Source: Mantamonas sphyraenae STR306 (taxonomy: Eukaryota; Protista; CRuMs). From it: a stretch of DNA of 64,000 nt. The notes beneath the pieces were generated by a model. It saw nothing but the letters and a program-made list of their open reading frames with translations. It did not search any database and was not told the DNA's origin. The stretch spans positions 310,001 through 374,000 of the forward strand of contig JAPMXV010000030.1 in NCBI GenBank assembly GCA_026936335.1, in the 5' to 3' direction. Below, piece after piece: positions 30,090 through 43,300 of this stretch (within the stretch, counting starts at the first letter, position 1; the number at the start of each line of letters is the position of its first letter). The translations under genes and the position numbers were made by a program.

Positions 30090-33000
30090 TCACTCGGTCA
30101 TTCCATTTCCCCCTCGCACCAGGCTCCCGCCTCGCTTCTGTGCCTCCTCCTTGCGCACCTGATCCTGCCTGGCCATGTGGCTGCGTCGTTCCCGCAAAAG
30201 GCTCTCCGTTTCTAGGATCAGCCTCACCCACACCGGCTTGTTTGCCTCCACACGCTCCCGTGCCACTGTTGCAACAAGCACCTCCTTGCGTTCCTCCAGC
30301 TGCGCCACACTCAGCGGTGCCAGCTCGGCCTCGTCGTCACTGAGCTCCACTTCCTCCTCCCCTCCTTCTGCTCCGTAGTCGATGAACATCAGCTCTCGCT
30401 CCACAGAAGCCTCGTAGAATGACAATCCCAGCTCCGAAAACATCTCCTGCGACTCCTTCAGCAGCGTCTTGCGGAACGACGCCTCGCGCAGCTCCCATCC
30501 AGCTGACGACGAGTTCCCCGCGCCTTCGTCCTTCACATTCAGCGCCCCCGTGCGCTCTGGATGCTTCACGTCGTGACGTGCAATGTCTGCACGCACCAAC
30601 GCACGCTCCAGCGCCATTTCGTTGCCCTTTCGCTTCGCTTCCACAGTTTCCATCCACGTCGCCAACGCCGCAGCCACCCTGCCCGTCAGCCAACTCTGCT
30701 TGCCGTCGTAGTAGTTCAGACGAGCGTGTGCAAACTCAAACACTCGCTCGTACTTTTTCATCGCCTTGTGCACCTGCGCACACAGAGTCTGGTACTCCCG
30801 CCGTTCCTTCTCCCGTCTACGCACCCCGTCCCTGTTTTGCAGCATAGCATGCCGCGCGATGCGCCTGTTGTTCCTCTCCCATCCCCAGTAGCCCACATGT
30901 AGCAGTGTCACAAGCGTCACATACAACGTGGACGTGGTTTGTGGCGCACGTTCCAGCTCCCTGCTTGCCTCCTGCGCACGTTCCAGTGCTTCCTTGTGTT
31001 CCCCACGATTGTGATGCAGCATTGCCAGCGCAGCATACACTGCGCTCCGCTTCCCGCTGTCCTCCGTCTCTGCCCACTCGCGCAGCCGCTGCAGTTTCGA
31101 CCCCAGCCGCGCCGCCTCGGTCAACTCGCCCAGCAGGATCAACACCACCATCTGCAGACTCTGCACTTCCAGAAGGATCGACTTGTCGTGCAGCTCCTGC
31201 ACAAGCTTCACCAGGTAGCCCAGCTCCATCTGCGCACGCTCCAGCTCCCCTTCCAAGAAGGCAATCACAGCCAATCGCAGCAGCACCTTGCTCCTCTTGC
31301 GCGAGTCGCCCAGGTCCTCGTACACCGAAGCCGCACGCTTCAGCTCGTTGCTGGCACCCGCCCAGTTGCCTTGCACATACTCCAGATACGCACCTTGTTC
31401 GCTTACCAGTGCCCCCGACGACTTGCTTCGCAGATACATGCTCAGCTCCCCCGCACGCTGCCGGTACTCTTTGGCTTTGCTCAGGTTGCACGACAACACC
31501 GCTGCCAGCGACGCCTCCGCCACAACCAGCGTCTGCAGAAGCAGATCCCGTGTCGTTTGTCCATCAAACGACGACGACAACGCACGCGGGCCCAGTTGCT
31601 TCAGCGCCATCAGCGTGCTGTTCACTGCCTTTTCCACCTCGTTCTGCTCGTAATGACACACCGCCAGCAGTTGATACAGACGCGCCACCGTGCGAACCTC
31701 TTCGTCGTACTCTTCCTCGTCCGCCGAATCCCCGTCGCGCCGCCCTCCTCCACGTCGACGCAGTGTGCCCAGTCCCAAGAACCCACTGCTGCTGCTGCTT
31801 TCGTCCTCCATAATGTCTTGGATCGCAGACGACGGCAACGGCTGCTCCAGCAGTTCCAGCCCTTCTTCCAATTCCGATTGCGCACGTTCCTTTCGCTCAA
31901 TGCCCAGGTACGCCTCTGCAAGCTCCAAGCGCAGACGCGCTCCCTCCACACCTTCGCTCAACAGCGGCACCACCGTGCGTTGGAACGCCTCGTTCGAATC
32001 ATCCACCGCTCCGTCCTTGCTTGCGCCATCGCTTGCGCCATCGCTTCCTGTGCCGCCGCTGCTGTTGTTCCCGTCGTCGCCACTGCCCAGCCGTCGTGTC
32101 TTGTTGCCCACAGGCTCTTGGATCGGCCTCCAGCCATACTCGGGGTCATCGCCGTCATGTTGCCGTCGCCATAAAGCATGTTGCTGTCCAGCAGATGCTT
32201 CTTTGCCTGCACCACCCCATCTTGAGCAGGTACACGGCGTCGTAAAAGTCGCCCACGTTCAAGGCCTGCGTGCCTGCCTTTTCGAAAAACACCGCCGCCC
32301 TGTCCGCGCGTCCGGCCGTCGCGTAGTAGTCCGACACCATGTTGTACACAAAGGGAAGGTGCGGGGTGTTGCGCACATTCCAATCGGCCACCACGCCGCG
32401 CACCTTGCGACACCAGCTTTCCACACGCTCCAGCCGCGAAACGTGCAACTGGAACAGCGAGCTGGCAAACTCCAGCCGAGTTGTGTGTCCTCGCACCGGC
32501 ACGAAAATCTCCATCGCCACAAGGGTGCGCACCGCCCTCTTCAACACATTGCTACGTCCTGCCAGCTCGCTCGACTTGTTCGTGGCCTTGACGCTGCCGG
32601 CAATGTCGATCAGCTCGCGCACGGAAAATTGTTGCCCGATCGCGCTGCCACATTCCAGCACGTGCCTCAGGTGCAACGGGAACCTGTCCACGCGCTTGGC
32701 CAGGATATCACTGTGCGACTCGATGCCAAACTTGCTCACATTGCTGCCTGGTCGCACACGAACGCGGTTGGTCTCCCTGTCCAGGCGGATCATTGAGTTT
32801 TCTGCAAGCGCACGCATCAGCATCTCGCACCACAGCGGCGAGCCACCGCAGTGCTGGTCCAGCATAAGCAACACAGGCAGCGGCAACACGAGCTCGTCCA
32901 CATCCACCGCCATGTTGACCGCCTTTTGGGCCACGCACACACACTCCTTCACACTCAATGGCCCCACCTGGATCACTTCCGTGTCTTCTCGGTTCATCAG

Positions 33001-34208
33001 CATCGCCAACACAGGGTGCTTCACGTGCATGCCCCGGCCCGTGCCTTCCACCCCTCCCACACCGTCGCCGCCCAACGCCGCCTCGCCACCCCTGCCTTCC
33101 TCATCTTCCTCCACCTCTTCCTCCAGACCCATCATTGTGGCCAACGAACGCTCGGGGATCTTGGCCTTGTAGCGTTCGTGGGGCTGCGTCATGGCCGCCT
33201 GGATCAGATCCGTGTCGTCTTCGTCCACCGCAAAGCCTCCCATCAGTTCCGGCTGCTCCAGGCCGATGCCAGCGAACAAAGCACGCTCCTTTGCCTCCAG
33301 ATCCAACATCTGGTCGTGATCTTCGATGTGGCCAATCTTGCGGCGCACGTCCAACTGCTTACTCAGCGGACGGGTCACAAACAACAGCAGGAGGTTGGGC
33401 ACATGTAGCATCAGGTCTGCACACAGCTGCCACGACGGCTCGTCCATCCATTGTGCGTTTTCAAGCACCACCACAACGGGACACTGCGCCGTCGCCTCAA
33501 GAAACAGGTCCACAAACAGCTTTCGGGTCACCGACCCACGCAGTGTGCCCGACAGAGACTCGGTGTACTCTGTCTCGGGCATCACCCACGGCATGACCGC
33601 GTTCAACAGCGGCAGGCGGTCCACGTACGACGGGTTCTTCCGGATGATGCCGTACACTCCCTCTCCACCTCGTCCGTCTTCCAGCGACATCAGCGCCTGG
33701 AACACACTCTGGAACGATGCATACGCCGTGTTGACGGCTCGCAGATCGGCATTGCCTGTGAGGACCGGCACGTCGCAGTACTCACACAGATACCCAAACT
33801 GTCGTACCAGAGCGCTCTTTCCATACCCAGGCGGTCCCTCCACAACCACACACCGCGACGCACCCGTCTTTACAAGGTTGTTCAGTTGCGTCTGCAGCCG
33901 GCGGTACTCTTCACGCCGCCCAAAGAACAGATGGTCCAACAACTCCTCAGGCGCATCCGCAGATGACAACACACGCGGGCGCCTGCTCAACATGCCCGGC
34001 TTCGTCAGCCCGGCCTCTCGCACAAGTTTGGCCAGCCGTTGGGCTTTCATGGTCTCGCGACGCGTGCGGTTGCGCAGCTCGTTCGCCTTTGCTTGTCGTT
34101 CGGCCTCGTTGGCCTGCTTCTCCACCAAACTCTCCTCCGCAGCCCCTTCCTCACGCACCTCGTTGTCAACGGCACCTTCGCCACGGTGTTCCCCTCTAGG
34201 ACTGCTGC

Positions 34209-34241
<33 letters not shown>

Positions 34242-37200
34242 CTGCATCGCCTCCGCTGTCGGTGCCTCGTTCGCTGCTGCTCGCTCCGCGAGGGCTCTCG
34301 GACCCATCGGATGAACTGCTTCCGTGGCGCGATGACCGTCCCTTGAGGCGGACAGGCGTTTGTTGTTTCTGTTTTTGTTGTTGCTGCTGCTCGTGCTGCT
34401 CGTGCTGCTCCAGGCCACGCTGCAGAAACAAGTACCTCTGCACCGCCTCGCCATCCTTGGCCAGCTGTTGGCGCGTCTCTGCCTTTTGCTCTTTCCACGT
34501 CGACTTGAACGACGTCACGCGTGCCTGCACAGAGTGCACAACCTGCGACCCTTCCGTCAGACTGGCCAGTACTCCATTGTCGGCCACCATCTTGTCCCAA
34601 AACTCAAGGAATCCGGCCACGCCTTGCGCACGCTCCATCGCAAGCACGTTGTCGTCCCCCATCATATAGTACAGCACCGAACCCTCTCCCAAAATGGCAC
34701 GAAGAACACGCAACACAGTTGCAGGGTTGGGTGGAGGGTCGCCGGCGCGCGACGACGTCGATGCCATCCTGCGCTTGCTACTCCTTCCGCTCTCGCCATA
34801 CTCGTCTTCCTCCTCGTCTTCGTCTTTGCCCTCTTCTTCTTGCTCAGCAGCCAGGCGGGCAGCCTCCTCGGCTTCGGCTTTGCGCCGTTGCGCTTCGCGT
34901 AGATATGCGAGAAGCGTGGTCAGCATGAAGCTGAGCAGCGCTTCGGGCTCCTCACGATTGGGCAAACGCGGCATGGAACCAGAGTTGATGTACTCCACAA
35001 TGGCCATCAGGCGGTTGACGTACTTTTGCATCACATCACTCTTGTCCGTGCTGGTCAACACAAGCAGCGCCACACGGATGCTCAGTTCAAGTGGGTCTTC
35101 GCATGTGAGCTGGTCCTTCTCGCCACGCTTGCCAATGCCGAGCCTGTTGATTGCCTGGCGCAGTTGGTTTGTGCTGTGATCTGCCGCCAGCTCGATGCCA
35201 TCCTCCTCCTGCGGCAGCAGCTTCAGCTTGCTCAGCAGCAGGTAGCACACGTCCAGCAAATCCACTTGGTTCTTGTCAACCCATGTGTGAAACGGTGCCA
35301 TGCGCAGCCACCTTCCGTCCAGTCCGCCCGCTGCCGACATTGAGCGTCCGCTGCTCCCTCCGCTTTTGCGTTCCTGCTCTGCCTCCGCCGTCTTACCCGT
35401 CTCTCCACTGCCCTGACTCGACGACGACGATGACGCTGACAACGACCGTGCCGAGGATGAGGCTGCTGCCTGCACCTGTGTCAACCCGACAATGTGCTCC
35501 TGAAGTGTGGACGACGTATGCAGGTAATCCAGAAGTAATGACGTCAGCTGTACCATGTGCACGCGCACGTGCATGTCGTCAATGTCCTCCAGCTCGCTCT
35601 TTTTGCTGCGAATGAAATACAGCATCGACTTGAGTGCCAGCAGCGGCAGATCCATCTCACGAGTCACAGGAGGCCCCTGTTCCGCAAACACCTCCATGTG
35701 GATCATGGAGGAGCGAAAGAATGGCAGCGCCTGCTGTGTTTGCGTGTCCACGCGCCATTCGTGGTAGTGCACTGTCTTGAGCACGTTCATCGTGTACACC
35801 AAAAGCATGTCCTTTGGCCCCTTCAGTGGGAACAGCTCCATGCAGCTAAGCAACCATGGCCTCCACGCACTGTTGGCCATCATATGTGCACAGTTGCCAG
35901 GGTTCTTCATCAGCAGCACGTTGATGTCCTGCAACAACTTCTCCATCGTCTCCTTCTCCGCCGTGTGGCCCAGCACGAGCAACATGGCACGCAGAGCGTA
36001 GATGTTGCGCAGCTTCATCTCAAATGCAGTCGTTATCGCCGACTCGCTGGGCTCTGCAAGCTCAAAGTCGCCCAGCAGCCAGCGGAACATCACGTTGTAC
36101 AGGTCCCAGTTGAACCCGTACGCTTGCACCTCGTCGCACACGTACTTGAAGATAAGCTCGCTCAGCGCCGCGTTGGTGTCTTCCACCTTGGTATGCACAA
36201 GCTTTACCATCAACTGCAGCCCCACGAGACGCACACGTCGCTCGGGATGGCTCAGAAGCTTCAGAAATGTATCCACGCCACCCAACCACCACAGATTGTC
36301 GTACAGCTTCTGCACCACCTCAGGGTCGGTGTTTGACAATGATCGTACAGTGGTGCGCACGTCGCTAAACGACACACCTCCTCCGCCGCCTCTGGGGCTG
36401 CTCGACGACGATCCGGCATGGTCCAACTCGCCCGTGTCGCTGTCGCTCCTCTTGCTCAATGCCCCACTTTGCGCGCTGCTGCCAGCGCTATCTGATGACA
36501 CCTTGCGCGTCAACGAGCCCATCCTGGACAAAGACTTGATGCTCGTGCTGGGTGACGGCTCGTTGGACGAATCACCAGCACTGCCGCCAACTGTTGCATC
36601 ACCTCGCCCAGTGCTGCTGCTGCTGGACGATGTTGTACTCTGTTCCACCAGCATGCCGTTTTCGTCGTATGTCTGCGCCACCGAATCGACCACAACAAAG
36701 TCGTAGAACATGGCCAGGACCTCGTACAGCGAGTTGCTGTCTGTACATGTGTGCATAAAGTCCAAAAAGGCCTGTGTGGTCTTGTGAGTCAGAGCCCCGT
36801 CGTATTTGCTGTCAATGAGCTCGCTGATCAACTTGAGAATGCGGCGGCGGTATTCCTGGATTTGAGCCTGTGGAGGGCGCTCCAGCATCACCTCTCCCGT
36901 CTTGTAGTGCAACATAGTGTACCCCAGCGAGTAGGCCTGGCGTTCGTCCCACAAAAACACGCGCACCAGCTCGAGCAGGTCTCCCAGGGACACAGCCTTG
37001 TGGAAAAAGGCGTAGTCGCGCGCAAAGGTGGTCTCCATCCACTCCACCCACGACAGCAGCATCGATCTGTCACAGTAGATCCACACACGCGCGTCCACAA
37101 ACAGCTTCTTGTGAGCCATGCTTGAAAACGAAGAGGGAAACGCACGTGCAAGGTCTTGCAATGCATGAAAGATGTCATAGTCCAACACACTGGGCTTGGT

Positions 37201-40200
37201 CCTGCGAAGCACTCGGTTCAACATGTCCACCAGTTCAATCTGGGCCTCGTATGCCCCTTTGGCCATCGACGGCGCGTCCCTGCTGTGCTCGGACGACTCG
37301 TTGATCATGCGCCAGCTTACGAGAACATCCAACAGCACACCGATCAGTTGATACAGCATGTGCGACTGTTCACTGTCTCGCGTCGCCTCGTTGCTTGCCC
37401 CTGCTGTGCTGGGTGAAAGCGGGGCAGAGTTGCTCTTGCTCTCGTCGCCCGATGATGCGCCCCCTGCGTTGTCGCCGCCGCCCTCGCCGTTTACAAGCAG
37501 CTCGGTCATGTTCAGCAGCTGCGTGAGGCTCTCGTCCATTGCAAACCGCTTCGATTTTGTGTCACTTCCCTCCAACGCCTCCATCGTACTCTTGCCGAGT
37601 GCGTCGAGCTGTGCCAGAAGCAGCTCATCGGCCCCAGCCAAGGCCCCCGGCTGCTGCTGTTCCTCTCCATCTTGCTTTTCACTCCCATCTCCCCCGTTTG
37701 TGGCATTCTCTTCCAATTTCAGTGTCGGTATGCCGTCCAATGAATTCTTCTGTGCGTGCTCGTCGGAGGCCACTTTGAGCAGATCGACTCCGACGGGCAA
37801 GTTGTACGGGTTTCGCTTAAGAAGCGGCTTGAGCAAAGGCAAGAGTTGACGCAGTCCACCTGCACTCGAGAGAGTGCTGCTAATGTGGGTTGTGCTGCTA
37901 AACAACACCTTGCCTCGTGCGGTGAGGTTCCAGTGTTCGTTGAGGTCAATGGCCACATTGCCTGTGCTCCAGTGTGCGCTGTACTGCGCCAACGACATCT
38001 GATTCAGCATCTTGGAGGTGCTGGGTGCGGTGCGACGCAGGTTGGGTCCAGCCTCATACAGCTCCCGCAGCTGCTCATCGTCGGCACCTCCACGCAACAG
38101 GCACACCTGGCCCAACTCGCCAAACAGGGCCCGGTTTACACGCCCCTCGTTCTCATCCTCGTCTGTGCTGCCCGTGTTGCGTGCACCCAGAAAGCCCAGC
38201 ACTGACACGGAACGGCTGTTGGCTGAGGCCATGGCTGGCCCGTTGCCCAGAGTCAGGTTGACCATTTCTACATCCAAGCGGGGCACGGCCATTTCCTGCG
38301 AGCCCACCTCTTCGCCGTCCACGTACAGGGTGACAGTGCCGTCCTGGGGCACGCGGTCGTATGTGTGTCGCAGCGACACAAAATACCACTGACCCGGGTT
38401 GAAGGTGTGCCGCGCAAAGTGGGCCACCGAGTCGACGTCGCTGCGCTTGCCCAACACCACGCGGTACTTGAGATTGTGTTCGTCAAAGAAGCAGTCGATG
38501 CCCGTGCCCTTGTCTGTGCTGATGTTGAACAGACGCGGCAGATGTTTCACTTGAGTTCGCGACGAGCTGACTTGGATCTCGTCCACCGTCATGCCTGGTG
38601 CGCTGAAACCCTCAATGCGCACCCACATGCACATTGTGTATCCGATGTGTTCGCACACACGCCAGGTCACGGTGTTGGTGGAGCACAGCCCCGTGCTGAA
38701 TCCGTCCAGCGAGAACACAGCTTCAGGCAGCTCATCAAACTCCATCAATGAGCGCCATGTGCGCAACAGTTCCACGGAGCGACCGTACTTTTCGGCTGCA
38801 ATGCATTGCGATGCATACTGTGCAAACAAATGGATGGCCTGCGGAGAAATGGAGCACCGTGCAAGGGTACGAAACAGCGCAAGGGCACGTGTGTGCAATG
38901 ACGACGAGCGCACCTCGGGAAGATAACTCAGCACATAGTCCAGCACCATCATTTGGGCGGCCACACGCAGGTTGAACGAGAGATGATCCACCAACTGGGC
39001 GACCATTTCCAGCACCTGACTTTGCAGTTCGTGCTCCAGCACGGGCAACAGCGCCACCAGCAGTGGCGCCATTGTTGGTGACTTGATGACATACTCTCCG
39101 TTCAGGGCAAATTCCCCCTTGCCCACAATGGCCTCAAAGGGCCACGGATAAAACTCGCTGCCAAACACCGACCCAGACACAGCTGCGCAGGTGTGTAGGT
39201 GTGTGTGTGTGTGTTGTGTGAGTGACGTATGGTGTGACTGTACGGGAAAACCACACATGTAGGATGCCTGTGGGGGCGAGGGAAACATCCAAACACGTAC
39301 ATGTCTGCGTGGGTTGCTGGCCTGTGCGCGCTCGCGGTTGTCGAAGCATCTGCGCAGTGTGCGGGTTCCCGCCAGCCCTCTGCGTCAGTGCTCGCTTTCC
39401 ATACCACCACCACCACACACACACACAGTGGAACAAAATCACGCGTTTGGGCCTCCCACCCCGCAGGGACGGCGCTGGTGCAGCCGCGTGTGCGTGCGGG
39501 GAGCGTGGCTTCGAAATGGTTGTGCAGAGGGGGTTACCGGCGTGACACCCACGCCCCAGTCTGACGCACCCTGCACTCCACTTACCATGTGAAAGAGGGC
39601 AGCCAGCAGACCAGGCATCTGCACACGCGACACGTTGTTGACCAGAAAGAGGCGCAGCTTTTGCACGGCTGTGCGGTTGCGTGTCTGTTCGCTCTCGCTG
39701 GTGTTGGCTTGGAAAAAGTGCTTTTGAGCAAACTCCCACTCGCGTCGCTCCCGCTCCACTGCCTGCCTGTCCATGTCAAACAGGCTCGTGATGGTGTCAT
39801 CCACCCCAATGTGCACACTCTTGGGCCCTGAATCATCCTCGTCGGCCGCCCTGTCTTCGTCGGCCCCGGCCTCCAGATTCGCTGAGCTCCCGCCCCTGAA
39901 GAAGCCCCACCGACGTCCCCCGCCTTGTTGCTCTCCACTCACGCCGTCCATCAAATTGCCCGTCGCTTGTTGACTGGGCCGCGTCTCACTGGCCGATGTG
40001 TTTGCCTTTCCCGCATTCTCCTCCTGCTGTGCGCCGCTCTGGCTGCTGCTGCTCCCGACGCCTTCGCCTGCCGGTGCTTCCGCGCCTGTCCAGGCAACGT
40101 CCTTGAGCCCTGTGTGGACACACAGCTGGTCCAGCAGGAATAGATGCAATCCTGCTGCATTGGCGCTGTTTTGCACTTTCAGATACCTCAGAAAGTGCGT

Positions 40201-40236
40201 TTGGAACGCTGCAGACGCGTCCACGTTCTGCGCCAT
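30090..40236 (-). CDS. Giant (~3,260 aa) neurobeachin/LRBA-N-terminus + STAND NTPase + TPR fusion protein
   Basis: Predicted exons 40236-39586, 39349-39301 and 39182-30090, with compatible GT-AG phases. NBEA-like ARM/ConA/DUF4704 motifs, then FFGRREE...[12 protein letters not shown]...[11 protein letters not shown]...GGSPLW (ADCY10-type STAND), then TPR-like helices. Two 1-nt indels near 32215 and 32110. Confidence 0.8.
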
Positions 40237-40301
40237 CCGTCAAAACTTGTTTTCTTTGCCGAGCTCGTGCTTCATTGCTTGGGTTCATCCCCTCCACTCA
40301 C

Positions 40302-43300
40302 TCAATCATCCGTCTCCTTCAGCACCTGCGCCTTGAAGATGCCCCGCAGCGTGCTGGGAATCTCCTTGGTGTCCAGGCACACAAAGCCAGTGCCAGCCGG
40401 CAACTGGGACACCAATCGATCAGCCTGGTCCGAAAACGAGGCAATGAACAGAATGAAAGCGCCCACCTTTCGGTCCTGTGTCAGAGCGCGTCCCAGCTCC
40501 TCGCCACTGATGGCGTAGCGGTCCAGATTGGCATCTGAGATGACAAAGGCAAAGTAGTCGTCGCCTTCCTCCTCGCGCACAGCCTTGATGGCACTCTCGG
40601 CCGCCTGAACTGTGCTGTCACCCGACATGCAGTACTGTGCATGTGCATGCATGCGTTGCAACACGCTGAACATCTCCTTCTTGTTCGCAGGCGGCTTGCC
40701 CCAGTTCACCAGCGGGATGGCTGGTCCATCGCCCGAGTGGCCCACCACAGAGTAGTCAAACTTGCGGTCAAACCCGTCCAGCGATTCCATGATCATGCAC
40801 GTGGTCTCCAGCACCCTGTTCAGGCGCTGATCCCACCCGTTGAAGCGGTACATGGATCCGGAGATGTCGATGGCAAACCGCAGCCGCTTGGGCTTCTCCT
40901 GATGGAACGGATCCTCGTTGTCGTCGCCTCTGCGTCTGTAAATGGTCTTTGTGCCGGTGATGCCTTCCACAAGCTTGCCATCGTCCAAGTCGCCCGATGT
41001 CTGATGCTTCAGCCACACACGCTCCTTGCTCTTCGCTTCCAGCCCCTCCAGGATGTTGCGCAGTTGTGCAATCTCCTTGGCCACACTGTTGTAGATCTTG
41101 TCATACTGCTCCGCGTGGAATTCGCTCATTTCGATTTCCTTCAACCGCTCTGCGTACGCCTTTTTGGCCATCTCACGCGCCCGCTGACGCACCTCGTCCG
41201 ACACAGCGGCCTTGACATCGTCGGGCACCTGGTGCACGGGGAAGCCACCATCCATACGATAGGGACCCCCGGCACCACCAAGTCCCGCTGTGTCTGCGCC
41301 TCCGGTGCCTCCCATCCATTGGTTGCCACCCACGTGCGGGTTGCCATCGGGCGCTTTGCCGTGCTTGGGATTACCCGACGGCTTCTTGCCCTCGTCGTAT
41401 TCATACTCCACCTTCATGCCGCCTGCGGCTTCAGCAGGCAGACCGACCATGGTGCGCCACTCACCCAGCTGACTTGCGAGCACTTCGGTGTCCAGCTGCC
41501 ACAAGCGAACCAGCCCGTTGCCTTGAAGCGAGGCCACACGGCCGTCGTCCAGCTGGCTCAATGCCACCACTGGGCTTACCGCTGTGGCACGTAGTTGCTG
41601 CGTCAGCAACTGTTGCACCGTGCCCTGTCGCAACATCGACGGCTTGCTCTTGCGCAGCAGTGGCGAGAACGACGGCACGTCGATTTCACGCCATGAGTCA
41701 CGTGCAAAGTCGGCCACCAACAGCTTGTTTGCTGCGTCCGGATGCTCCTCCGGCTCAATGTCCGAGTCTTGGGGAGCCATCAGCTGGGCACTCACCACTG
41801 TTTGCCGCTCGCCGTCAAACAGGGCTGCCTGAGTCGCCCAAGTCGTGTCCGCTGGCGCTACATGAGGCACAGTGTCCACCTGCAACTCTCCATCCTGCTT
41901 GCCTTCTGTCCGCACCCACTGGCCCAGGCTGCCGGAATAGCCCACACCGGCTCGTTGAAGACCGCTGGTGTTGCTGCTTCCCTGATTCCATGCGTCGCTG
42001 CCACCCACTTCGGCCACAGGCCATTGCGGTACACCGTTGCTGTTGCTGCTGCTACTGCTGTTCTCGTTGGCCTTCCAAGCGCCGGTGACGCCTCCGCCAT
42101 TCTGCGTGTCCACCTCAATGACGGTGCCCGCATCTGTGGCAATCCACAGAGTGTTGGGCGTGGGCACGTGCACGCGCTGGACCTGCACGCCTGCGGGCAG
42201 TTGCACATGGTGCACCTGACCCGCGCGGAGGTCAAACAGCGACAGTGCACTGTGCATGGGCCTGTAGGCAGCCACAACCCCGGCGTCGCTTTGCGCCGTT
42301 TCCACAAACAGCGGCAAGGATTGCAACGCACTGCTCAGGCGATACTGCGTAAAATCCAGCAGGCGCTGGCCCCACGACGGTTTGCCCTTGCTGTCCAGAC
42401 TCTGGTCGCTGGGAATGTCCAAAGAGCGACACTCGCGACGCCACGGATCCACCATCAACATGCGGTTGTACGCACCGGAGTACACCAGCAGCTGGTCACC
42501 CGATGCGGCCAGATGTGGTCGTTGCGGAGCGGCGTACTGCGGAAAGATCTCGTCCAGATCCAGCGAGGTGTGCTGCGCAAAATCAGGCCCTCGGAACGAG
42601 TAGATGCGCAGTGGGTTGTCGGCGAGCACATGCAACGAGTTGTCGTGGCTCAATCGAGCCATACCCAGAGCCGCGCCCTCGCCAGGCACTCTCCAATGAG
42701 CCTCCTGCTCACTAAACTCGTCCACACGGCCCATGACCATTTCGGTGTCCCGGTCCACACCTTTGCTCCACTTCCATGGCCCCTTGGTGCTCAGGTCGTA
42801 CGTGTCGACCTGGACGTGGGGCATTTGTGAGTCGGGAAAGGGCGTGCAGGGTGGCGGCGCGCACAGGGCTGGGCAACTTCTGCTCAGCTGCGACATCGAC
42901 GGAAAAGCGTGCTGCGTTGAAGCCCACAGGAATGCCGTGTTTCTGAAACACACTCATGACGTGTTCTTTCATCTGGCTGTCGTACGAGTCAAAGGAAAAC
43001 ACATTGTGGAGTGTGGCCAGCATGCCATCGCCTGGGAAGCGTTGGAGGTGACGCACGAGATTGACCAGCTCGCGCGTGGAGTACGGATACGTGAGGATGC
43101 CCTGGTCAACAAGTGCGCGGAGGTCTGCAAACGCGTCCGTCAGCTTGTCCAGGTAGTGTTCGCTCACGTCCGGAGCATAGCTCTTCAGCAGCGCAATCTC
43201 GCTCGCCTTGTCCGGATTGTCCACGTCAAAGGCGGAAAAGATGTCGCTGCACTCGCGCACCAGGTCGTTGCCCAAAAAGGGGAAGCCTGGCTTGTTGCCC

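Follow-up and report, generated by a model that had tools for sequence, protein, structure and literature searches.

A BEACH-protein N-terminal scaffold joined to a STAND NTPase and TPR-like repeats in Mantamonas sphyraenae: a candidate NLR-like switch

BEACH proteins, among them neurobeachin, LRBA and LYST, are of importance for human immunodeficiency, autism and lysosomal disease, and proteins of the neurobeachin type anchor protein kinase A (PKA) in animals. STAND modules fuse promiscuously with many domains, and in MalT, Apaf-1, the NLRs and the cyclase-STAND-TPR proteins the effector holds the N-terminal position, followed by the nucleotide-binding oligomerization domain and then by repeats. 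The published domain order of neurobeachin/LRBA-type proteins is lectin-like, DUF4704/ARM, A-kinase anchoring protein (AKAP), DUF1088, PH, BEACH and WD40 (PMC6104133, PMC10398878). PH-BEACH suffices for rescue in Nbea knockout neurons and carries the best-documented activity of BEACH proteins, and in neurobeachin the ARM/DUF4704 part and the PKA-anchoring site each have distinct and less conspicuous effects (PMC6104133). For soluble adenylyl cyclase (sAC), the STAND-like tail has been described as unexplored (PMC7401349). In this study, we analyzed a stretch of 64,000 nucleotides (the window) from Mantamonas sphyraenae STR306, taken from contig 30 of a genome of 25 Mb with 59% G+C and long uninterrupted open reading frames (ORFs). 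Positions 40236-30090 of its minus strand are best explained as one protein-coding gene of ~3,100-3,300 aa. With a probability of about 0.6, we read its product as an NLR-like tripartite switch, in which a BEACH-protein N-terminal scaffold stands in the effector position and is gated by a STAND module, and which originated by domain shuffling.

The main ORF lies at 32155-39288 on the minus strand and encodes 2,377 aa in an open frame that spans 2,409 codons, and the next ORF on that strand (30090-32111) is of the TPR type. A first-pass annotation, made from the letters of the window, had reported this 2,377-aa ORF and read it as the neurobeachin/LRBA N-terminal order, followed by a STAND NTPase in the place of PH-BEACH-WD40 and by TPR-like helices, with no cyclase. 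The domain scan that it called for, run with Pfam on the ORF pieces separately, bore out each of these points and gave Laminin_G_3/DUF4704, AAA_16 and TPR families with no Beach or WD40. Laminin_G_3 was matched at residues 216-352 (29.3 bits, Pfam cut-off 27.6), and DUF4704 (E 5e-26) in two stretches, 36682-37215 and 35761-36312. Over its first 445 aa the protein can be aligned collinearly with a canonical BEACH protein encoded on contig 10 (tblastn, 22% identity over 432 aa, E 1.6e-20), and the family motifs of the ConA-like domain are conserved (alignment A2). The AlphaFold2 (AF2) model of the scaffold, built from seven sequences, is weak, with a predicted local distance difference test (pLDDT) score of 59.8; it places helices at model residues 28-138 and then a beta-sandwich, whose Foldseek matches in this low-scoring model are the LG domain of PAPP-A, pentraxins, laminin LG and the lectin-like domain of clostridial neurotoxin Hc. 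The same fold class was obtained by published threading of BEACH proteins (PMC10398878).

Beach (PF02138), PH_BEACH, WD40 and Guanylate_cyc had no Pfam match on the whole ORF at E<=0.1, Beach being absent at this threshold from every ORF of the gene, and the 613-aa linker between scaffold and NTPase, scanned alone, matched no Pfam family at all at E<=5. A BEACH, PH or cyclase domain hidden in the linker was rejected on the latter result. Compared with its own genome, the linker gave low-complexity matches only and no paralogue. A six-frame search found at least six canonical BEACH loci in the genome, on contigs 27, 10, 39, 72, 49 and 33, and none on contig 30.

The STAND module begins with an AAA_16 domain at residues 1788-1965 (Pfam E 1.9e-15). 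Pfam assigns the NTPase to AAA_16 and AAA_22, and to neither NACHT nor NB-ARC. The motifs follow one another along the minus strand: hGRxxE at 33907-33924, the Walker A motif GPPGYGKS at 33814-33837 (placed at ~33815-33838 by the first-pass annotation), Walker B at 33442-33474, the sensor motif TRP inside 33367-33381, 13 bases beyond the AAA_16 Pfam boundary, and a GxP motif, GGSPLW, at 32830-32847, which aligns with G[HN]P[FL]. In the motif alignment, Walker B has E-N in place of the usual E-D, and one bacterial homologue with otherwise standard motifs shares the E-N. The AF2 model of the module (alignment A1, 38 sequences) reached a pLDDT of 78.5 and a predicted template modeling score of 0.77, and its top Foldseek matches were MalT (8bob, E 1.8e-7), Apaf-1 (3sfz and 1z6t), PH0952 (6mfv), and NLRP and NRC proteins. 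The predicted fold is that of a nucleotide-binding domain, a helical domain and a winged-helix domain (NBD-HD-WHD), of the MalT-like STAND type. Between the NBD and the helical domain lies an insert of ~110 aa (33025-33354), predicted to be disordered, acidic and Gly-rich, and absent from the bacterial homologues. The model ends in helical hairpins, and the ORF at 30090-32111 carries TPR_12 and TPR_19 above the Pfam cut-offs. The TPR frame is open for 722 codons, and the TPR region has no paralogue in the genome.

The continuity of this DNA was examined in the assemblies of three other samples or runs of the same organism, all from one 2022 study (X1, X2 and X3), which contain ~90% of the words of positions 31500-37000. 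One 13.5-kb contig of X1 covers all of this interval, one contig of X3 covers 31500-36661, and X2 is interrupted only within a Ser-codon repeat at 34174-34247. The three assemblies differ from the window and from each other by single-base changes and are therefore not copies of the window assembly. Since the X1 and X3 contigs span the junction of scaffold and STAND independently of the window, a chimeric join is excluded at the DNA level; with all three assemblies collinear across the junction, the chimeric assembly that the first-pass annotation had named among the outcomes that would refute it was rejected. Two apparent "joints", from 31809 to 32179 and from 33123 to 35410, have sides of just 21-26 letters and are crossed collinearly by long contigs of the same runs; they were taken as repeat artifacts.

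Both apparent changes of frame in the window go back to single missing bases (Table 1). At the first site, the plus strand has an extra C behind 32214 in X1 and X2 and an extra A behind 32215 in X3, which gives GGG vs. GGT, both coding for Gly; at the second site, it has an extra G behind 32110 in X1 and X2 and an extra A behind 32109 in X3, which gives CTG vs. TTG, both coding for Leu. The inserted bases thus vary between X1/X2 and X3 synonymously only. Across the same interval the frame can be seen by eye to drift from 1 to 2 to 3. When a placeholder base was put at both gaps and the read-through frame was computed by script, 3,066 stop-free codons ran from 39288 to the stop at 30090, and the TPR ORF was joined in frame. 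The gaps of the window fall at exactly the two sites that vary among the samples, which is the pattern to be expected if the consensus went wrong where the site is polymorphic or heterozygous, and the two breaks are very probably assembly errors and not real lesions. Elsewhere in the genome, the same cause may underlie further seeming frameshifts or "exons".

The single-base differences between these contigs and the window number 24, of which 19 are synonymous and 5 are non-synonymous. All nine that fall in the STAND module are synonymous, the linker has 9 synonymous and 3 non-synonymous ones, and four of the five replacements are located in low-complexity stretches. Within the linker, a stretch of Ser codons (34194-34246) differs in length among the samples by 12 bases, in frame, and short-read contigs end there. 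The linker can be taken as coding because the probability that it is open by chance is ~8e-10 and because its G+C content by codon position (0.64/0.45/0.70) has the coding pattern of the flanking domains. From this comparison of samples, the entire frame, the linker included, looks constrained.

The first-pass annotation had placed the STAND among the cyclase-associated subtypes, and the relatives agree with this. The best sequence matches are class III cyclase-AAA_16-TPR proteins with 31-39% identity over ~200 aa; all seven of the top database matches that were scanned carry Guanylate_cyc and AAA_16, usually with TPR, and those with a named source come from Anaerolineae or Chloroflexota. Two sAC-like genes of the same genome belong here as well. 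The gene on contig 73 (197261-202417, plus strand) has two Guanylate_cyc stretches and then AAA_16, and the gene on contig 37 (211111-215295, minus strand) has two Guanylate_cyc stretches, AAA_16 and, in addition, TPR. In all of these closest relatives, the two own-genome genes and the Chloroflexota proteins alike, a class III cyclase holds the N-terminal position. Among the AAA_16 loci of the genome, of which there are at least 15, the two sAC-like genes likely represent the source type of the STAND module.

An ancient paralogue with the same order lies on contig 43 (213151-221783, ~3,150 aa) and comprises a degenerate ConA-like domain, DUF4704, AAA_16 and TPR. Its collinearity with the present gene begins in the N-terminal helices and reaches as far as the first TPRs, at ~23% identity, and its Walker B has the standard E-D. 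Its scaffold ORF and its AAA_16-TPR ORF are on the same strand and overlap by 88 bases in different frames.

Outside this genome, the architecture was sought in an exhaustive HMMER search of 1.84 billion representatives with a 1,200-aa query made of the C-terminal half of DUF4704, the linker and the NTPase. There were 2,585 matches, none below 1e-30; in the best 150 of them the best stretch always lay in the NTPase part and no protein was longer than 1,665 aa, and an orthologue that had diverged as far as the contig 43 paralogue would fall beneath that list. When the whole ORF, residues 40-480 and residues 985-1260 served as queries in word-indexed protein searches, the outcome was one bacterial cyclase-STAND, one weak BEACH match and nothing, respectively, and these blanks are uninformative because low complexity and divergence defeat a word index. 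A metagenome scan gave relatives at ~30% identity only, and the ESM Atlas gave either LRBA/DUF4704 fragments or clusters of AAA_16, none of them fused. The nine papers found to mention DUF4704 deal, as far as titles and abstracts tell, with no STAND fusion, and the literature search yielded no paper holding both a STAND NTPase and neurobeachin. In searches that reach weakly into eukaryotic proteomes, DUF4704 and STAND thus came up together in no protein, no Atlas cluster and no paper, in line with the first-pass view that no protein of this architecture had been described.

How such a protein might work can be outlined by analogy. The output position would be taken by a scaffold of ~1,200 aa, made of helical repeat, ConA-like lectin fold and DUF4704 solenoid, with the 600-aa linker behind it. 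The TPR region would keep the NTPase closed and ADP-bound; binding of a ligand or partner by the TPR would permit nucleotide exchange and oligomerization; and oligomerization would cluster the ConA-like/DUF4704 scaffolds, which could then recruit or concentrate partners. The scaffold would in this way be controlled by a STAND switch in place of PH-BEACH-WD40. Since the N-terminal position is that of the effector in related STANDs and here is filled by the scaffold, clustering of the scaffold by oligomerization would be the most likely mechanism. As its likeliest origin, domain shuffling within the lineage would have combined parts of a gene for a BEACH protein with parts of a cyclase-STAND-TPR (sAC-like) gene, and the product would then have been duplicated. 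The first-pass annotation went further and proposed a phagosome or immune-like switch controlling endolysosomal trafficking of the BEACH type. The analysis lends this no support: PH-BEACH, the best-documented part of BEACH proteins, is missing here, and little is established about what the N-terminal scaffold does, so that BEACH-type trafficking does not follow from the domains. More tentatively, and with doubt, one may generalize that BEACH proteins have in their N-terminal half an output module that is autonomous, and that in this lineage it came under a sAC-type STAND-TPR switch instead of PH-BEACH-WD40 and formed an old, two-member family of giant NLR-like proteins.

Several points weigh against the tripartite switch proposed here. 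We infer the single transcript, the 5' exon and the intron from the DNA, and the output step, from scaffold clustering to partners, is a guess by analogy. The E-N of Walker B may impair hydrolysis. The window sequence is frameshifted twice, and if the gaps were real in this strain, the protein would be without its TPR part. In the contig 43 paralogue, the frame changes exactly at the boundary of scaffold and STAND, and this locus could be two genes. Separate trees were built for DUF4704 and for the NTPase. The DUF4704 tree pairs the gene with a shorter gene on contig 15 that has neither STAND nor BEACH (support 97/95). The tests on this tree reject a DUF4704 clade made up solely of the present gene and its contig 43 paralogue (p 0.016), but not one that comprises all three genes (p 0.25). 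The NTPase tree is poorly resolved, with long branches. A point in favor is that the best NTPase likelihood found, above that of the free search, was obtained with the two STAND domains constrained as sisters; a single clade of the four own-genome STANDs is not rejected (p 0.42). Given the DUF4704 tree, a single fusion event is therefore not established; the trees are compatible with one fusion, a later duplication and a loss, and no more.

The kinship of the STAND with cyclases leads to another reading, in which the protein is a scaffold of the cyclic AMP (cAMP) pathway and not an immune-like sensor: a sAC-like gene whose cyclases were swapped for a neurobeachin-type scaffold, so that the STAND-TPR part gates a PKA-anchoring platform. 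This fits the cyclase-AAA_16-TPR relatives, including the two own-genome sAC-like genes, and the clade of four own-genome STANDs that the tree does not reject; moreover, NBEA, rugose and Tetrahymena Bcd1 are described as actual or possible AKAPs (PMC6104133, PMC10398878), and sAC itself has a putative STAND module whose function is undescribed (PMC7401349). However, no AKAP helix was identified in the protein, such a helix being not reliably recognizable from sequence, the linker is without detectable similarity to anything, the NTPase tree has the weaknesses named above, and even for the ciliate protein an AKAP role is called tenuous (PMC10398878). We regard this reading as unlikely. An improbable one, to our judgment, is also a constitutive structural scaffold, in which a fossil STAND no longer cycles nucleotides and the TPR region is a plain protein-binding platform that gates nothing by ligand. 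It would account for the Walker B E-N, where the family has E-D or D-D, and for the 110-aa disordered insert between NBD and HD, but Walker A, hGRxxE, the sensor TRP and GxP are all retained, the strain differences in the module are synonymous in 9 of 9 cases, and E-N occurs in a bacterial homologue whose other motifs are standard.

That the locus is an artifact or a dead gene, whether a chimeric assembly, two adjacent genes or a frameshift-truncated pseudogene, is highly improbable. The two frame breaks of the window at 32110 and 32214 speak for it, as do the fact that the gene is known from DNA alone and the split of the contig 43 paralogue into two frames at the junction. On the other side, X1, X2 and X3 run collinearly across the junction and give back an intact frame, there are zero stops in the 2,409 codons across it (with the ~8e-10 for the linker alone), the ratio of synonymous to non-synonymous differences is 19:5, both gaps sit on sample-variable sites, as consensus errors would, and the TPR frame stays open for its 722 codons. 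As far as DNA continuity is concerned, the artifact is largely refuted, and the NLR-like tripartite switch remains the reading that we prefer.

The first-pass annotation had also spoken of flanking exons. On the downstream side there is none, and what looked like an exon is the assembly frameshift; on the upstream side the proposal stands, with a putative exon and a likely GT..AG intron. The first ~40 codons past the ATG at 39288 are CA-repeat-like and non-coding in look, and the stretch 39183-39569 has a G+C content that is flat by codon position (0.63/0.59/0.63). The ORF at 39439-40236 opens with ATG and has a coding G+C pattern, and the putative 5' exon (0.65/0.46/0.70 by codon position) resembles the adjacent coding DNA. 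Two donors can be proposed, a perfect GTAAGT at 39585 (ATG|GTAAGT, phase 0) and a GTGCGT at 39569 (G|GTGCGT, phase 1), and a CAG acceptor at 39183 is compatible in phase with the 39569 donor and the main frame. From these signals there is likely one intron, at about 39183-39569/39585, as the sole GT..AG intron of the gene. No Pfam domain was matched in the putative 5' exon, which also shows no detectable similarity to where the genes on contigs 43 and 10 begin at their N-termini. Further upstream, the ORF at 40302-42953 has a stop of its own behind a terminal vWA-like domain; it was assigned to no Pfam family, and read by eye it would be a separate, VWA8-like gene. Between its stop and the ATG of the putative 5' exon there are 65 bases (40237-40304), with GTGAGT right after the stop, which would mean either a very tight intergenic spacing or a true start further downstream. 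The features of the locus are collected in Table 1.

Table 1. Features of the scaffold-STAND-TPR gene, in window positions.
Feature	Positions	Strand	Remarks
Putative 5' exon	39570..40236	-	ATG at 40236; coding-type codon-position G+C; presumed part of the gene
Putative intron	39183..39569	-	GT..AG, CA-rich; acceptor cag| at 39183
Main coding exon	30090..39182	-	One frame of ~3,030 codons, allowing for two missing bases; stop at 30090-30092
N-terminal helical (ARM-like) region	38644..39156	-	ORF residues 45-215; collinear with canonical BEACH proteins encoded elsewhere in the genome
ConA-like/Laminin_G_3 beta-sandwich	38089..38643	-	ORF residues 216 to ~400; Pfam, alignment motifs, AF2
DUF4704 alpha-solenoid	35761..37215	-	Profile positions 95-273 and 274-465, with a low-complexity insert (36313-36681) between them
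Linker, ~610 aa	33928..35760	-	Partly helical, partly of low complexity (Ser-, Glu- and Gln-rich)
AAA_16 nucleotide-binding domain	33394..33927	-	Pfam and motifs
Helical and winged-helix domains of the STAND module	32419..33393	-	Predicted (AF2 and Foldseek)
TPR-like sensor region, ~775 aa	30093..32418	-	TPR_12/TPR_19; Gly/Ser/Asp-rich stretch; acidic coiled-coil-like tail
Missing base relative to X1, X2 and X3	32109..32111		Source of the second apparent frame change
Missing base relative to X1, X2 and X3	32214..32216		Source of the first apparent frame change and of the stop at 32155

Parts of the gene also occur elsewhere in the genome, where other genes seem to make use of the STAND-TPR module and of a scaffold without BEACH. 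In the contig 15 ORF (278866-282120, plus strand, 1,084 aa), DUF4704 is the sole Pfam family at E<=0.01, and the ORF is followed by one that resembles a clathrin-adaptor subunit. A further BEACH-less ORF on contig 26 (112678-117060, minus strand, 1,460 aa) has weak Laminin_G_3 and DUF4704 matches, and a RING/UIM ORF lies ~600 bases downstream of it on the same strand. Around the sAC-like gene of contig 37, two tubulin loci (202215-202841 and 216554-217180), ~14 kb apart, flank the gene; they and a third locus on contig 39 (51740-52366) have identical Pfam scores and open frames of ~460 aa each, and the contig 39 copy is a beta-tubulin by translation.

The gene is real, is conserved within the species and was duplicated long ago. 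If the N-terminal half of BEACH proteins is indeed an output module in its own right, the gene would connect the ConA-like/DUF4704 scaffold known from neurobeachin and LRBA with the STAND tail of sAC, and it would be a natural separation-of-function experiment for both. A natural scaffold-only protein on a sAC-type STAND would imply that the scaffold can work without a BEACH domain and, further, that its clustering is a meaningful output. It would also add an unreported type of effector to the NLR-like architectures outside animals, plants and fungi.

Compared with neurobeachin/LRBA, the helical region, the ConA-like/Laminin_G_3 domain and DUF4704 come in the same order, and the pair of lectin-like domain and DUF4704 that marks the type is present, although identity to the canonical BEACH members is only ~22-25%. 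Unlike those proteins, this one is without PH_BEACH, BEACH and WD40, with no DUF1088 detected, and carries STAND and TPR instead. With the sAC (ADCY10)-like proteins and the bacterial cyclase-AAA_16-TPR proteins it shares the motifs hGRxxE, GxxGxGKS, hhhhE[DN]xxWxDxxSW, TRP and GxP, followed by TPR; the difference is that there is no cyclase domain here and that ~1,800 aa of BEACH-type scaffold and linker take the N-terminal position. The marks of a STAND are all found: Walker A and B, a predicted NBD-HD-WHD fold with GxP, and a C-terminal repeat sensor. In contrast to the NLRs, the NTPase is not NACHT or NB-ARC and the repeats are TPR and not LRR or WD40, so that what is shared with them is the tripartite logic only; and unlike MalT, Apaf-1 and the NLRs, the protein has no DNA-binding domain, CARD, TIR or other known effector and is far larger. 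It resembles MalT, Apaf-1, PH0952 and the NLRs in the tripartite layout and in the predicted NBD-HD-WHD fold, and by analogy the action of MalT, Apaf-1 and the NLRs, a nucleotide exchange released by ligand and followed by oligomerization, would be expected here as well.

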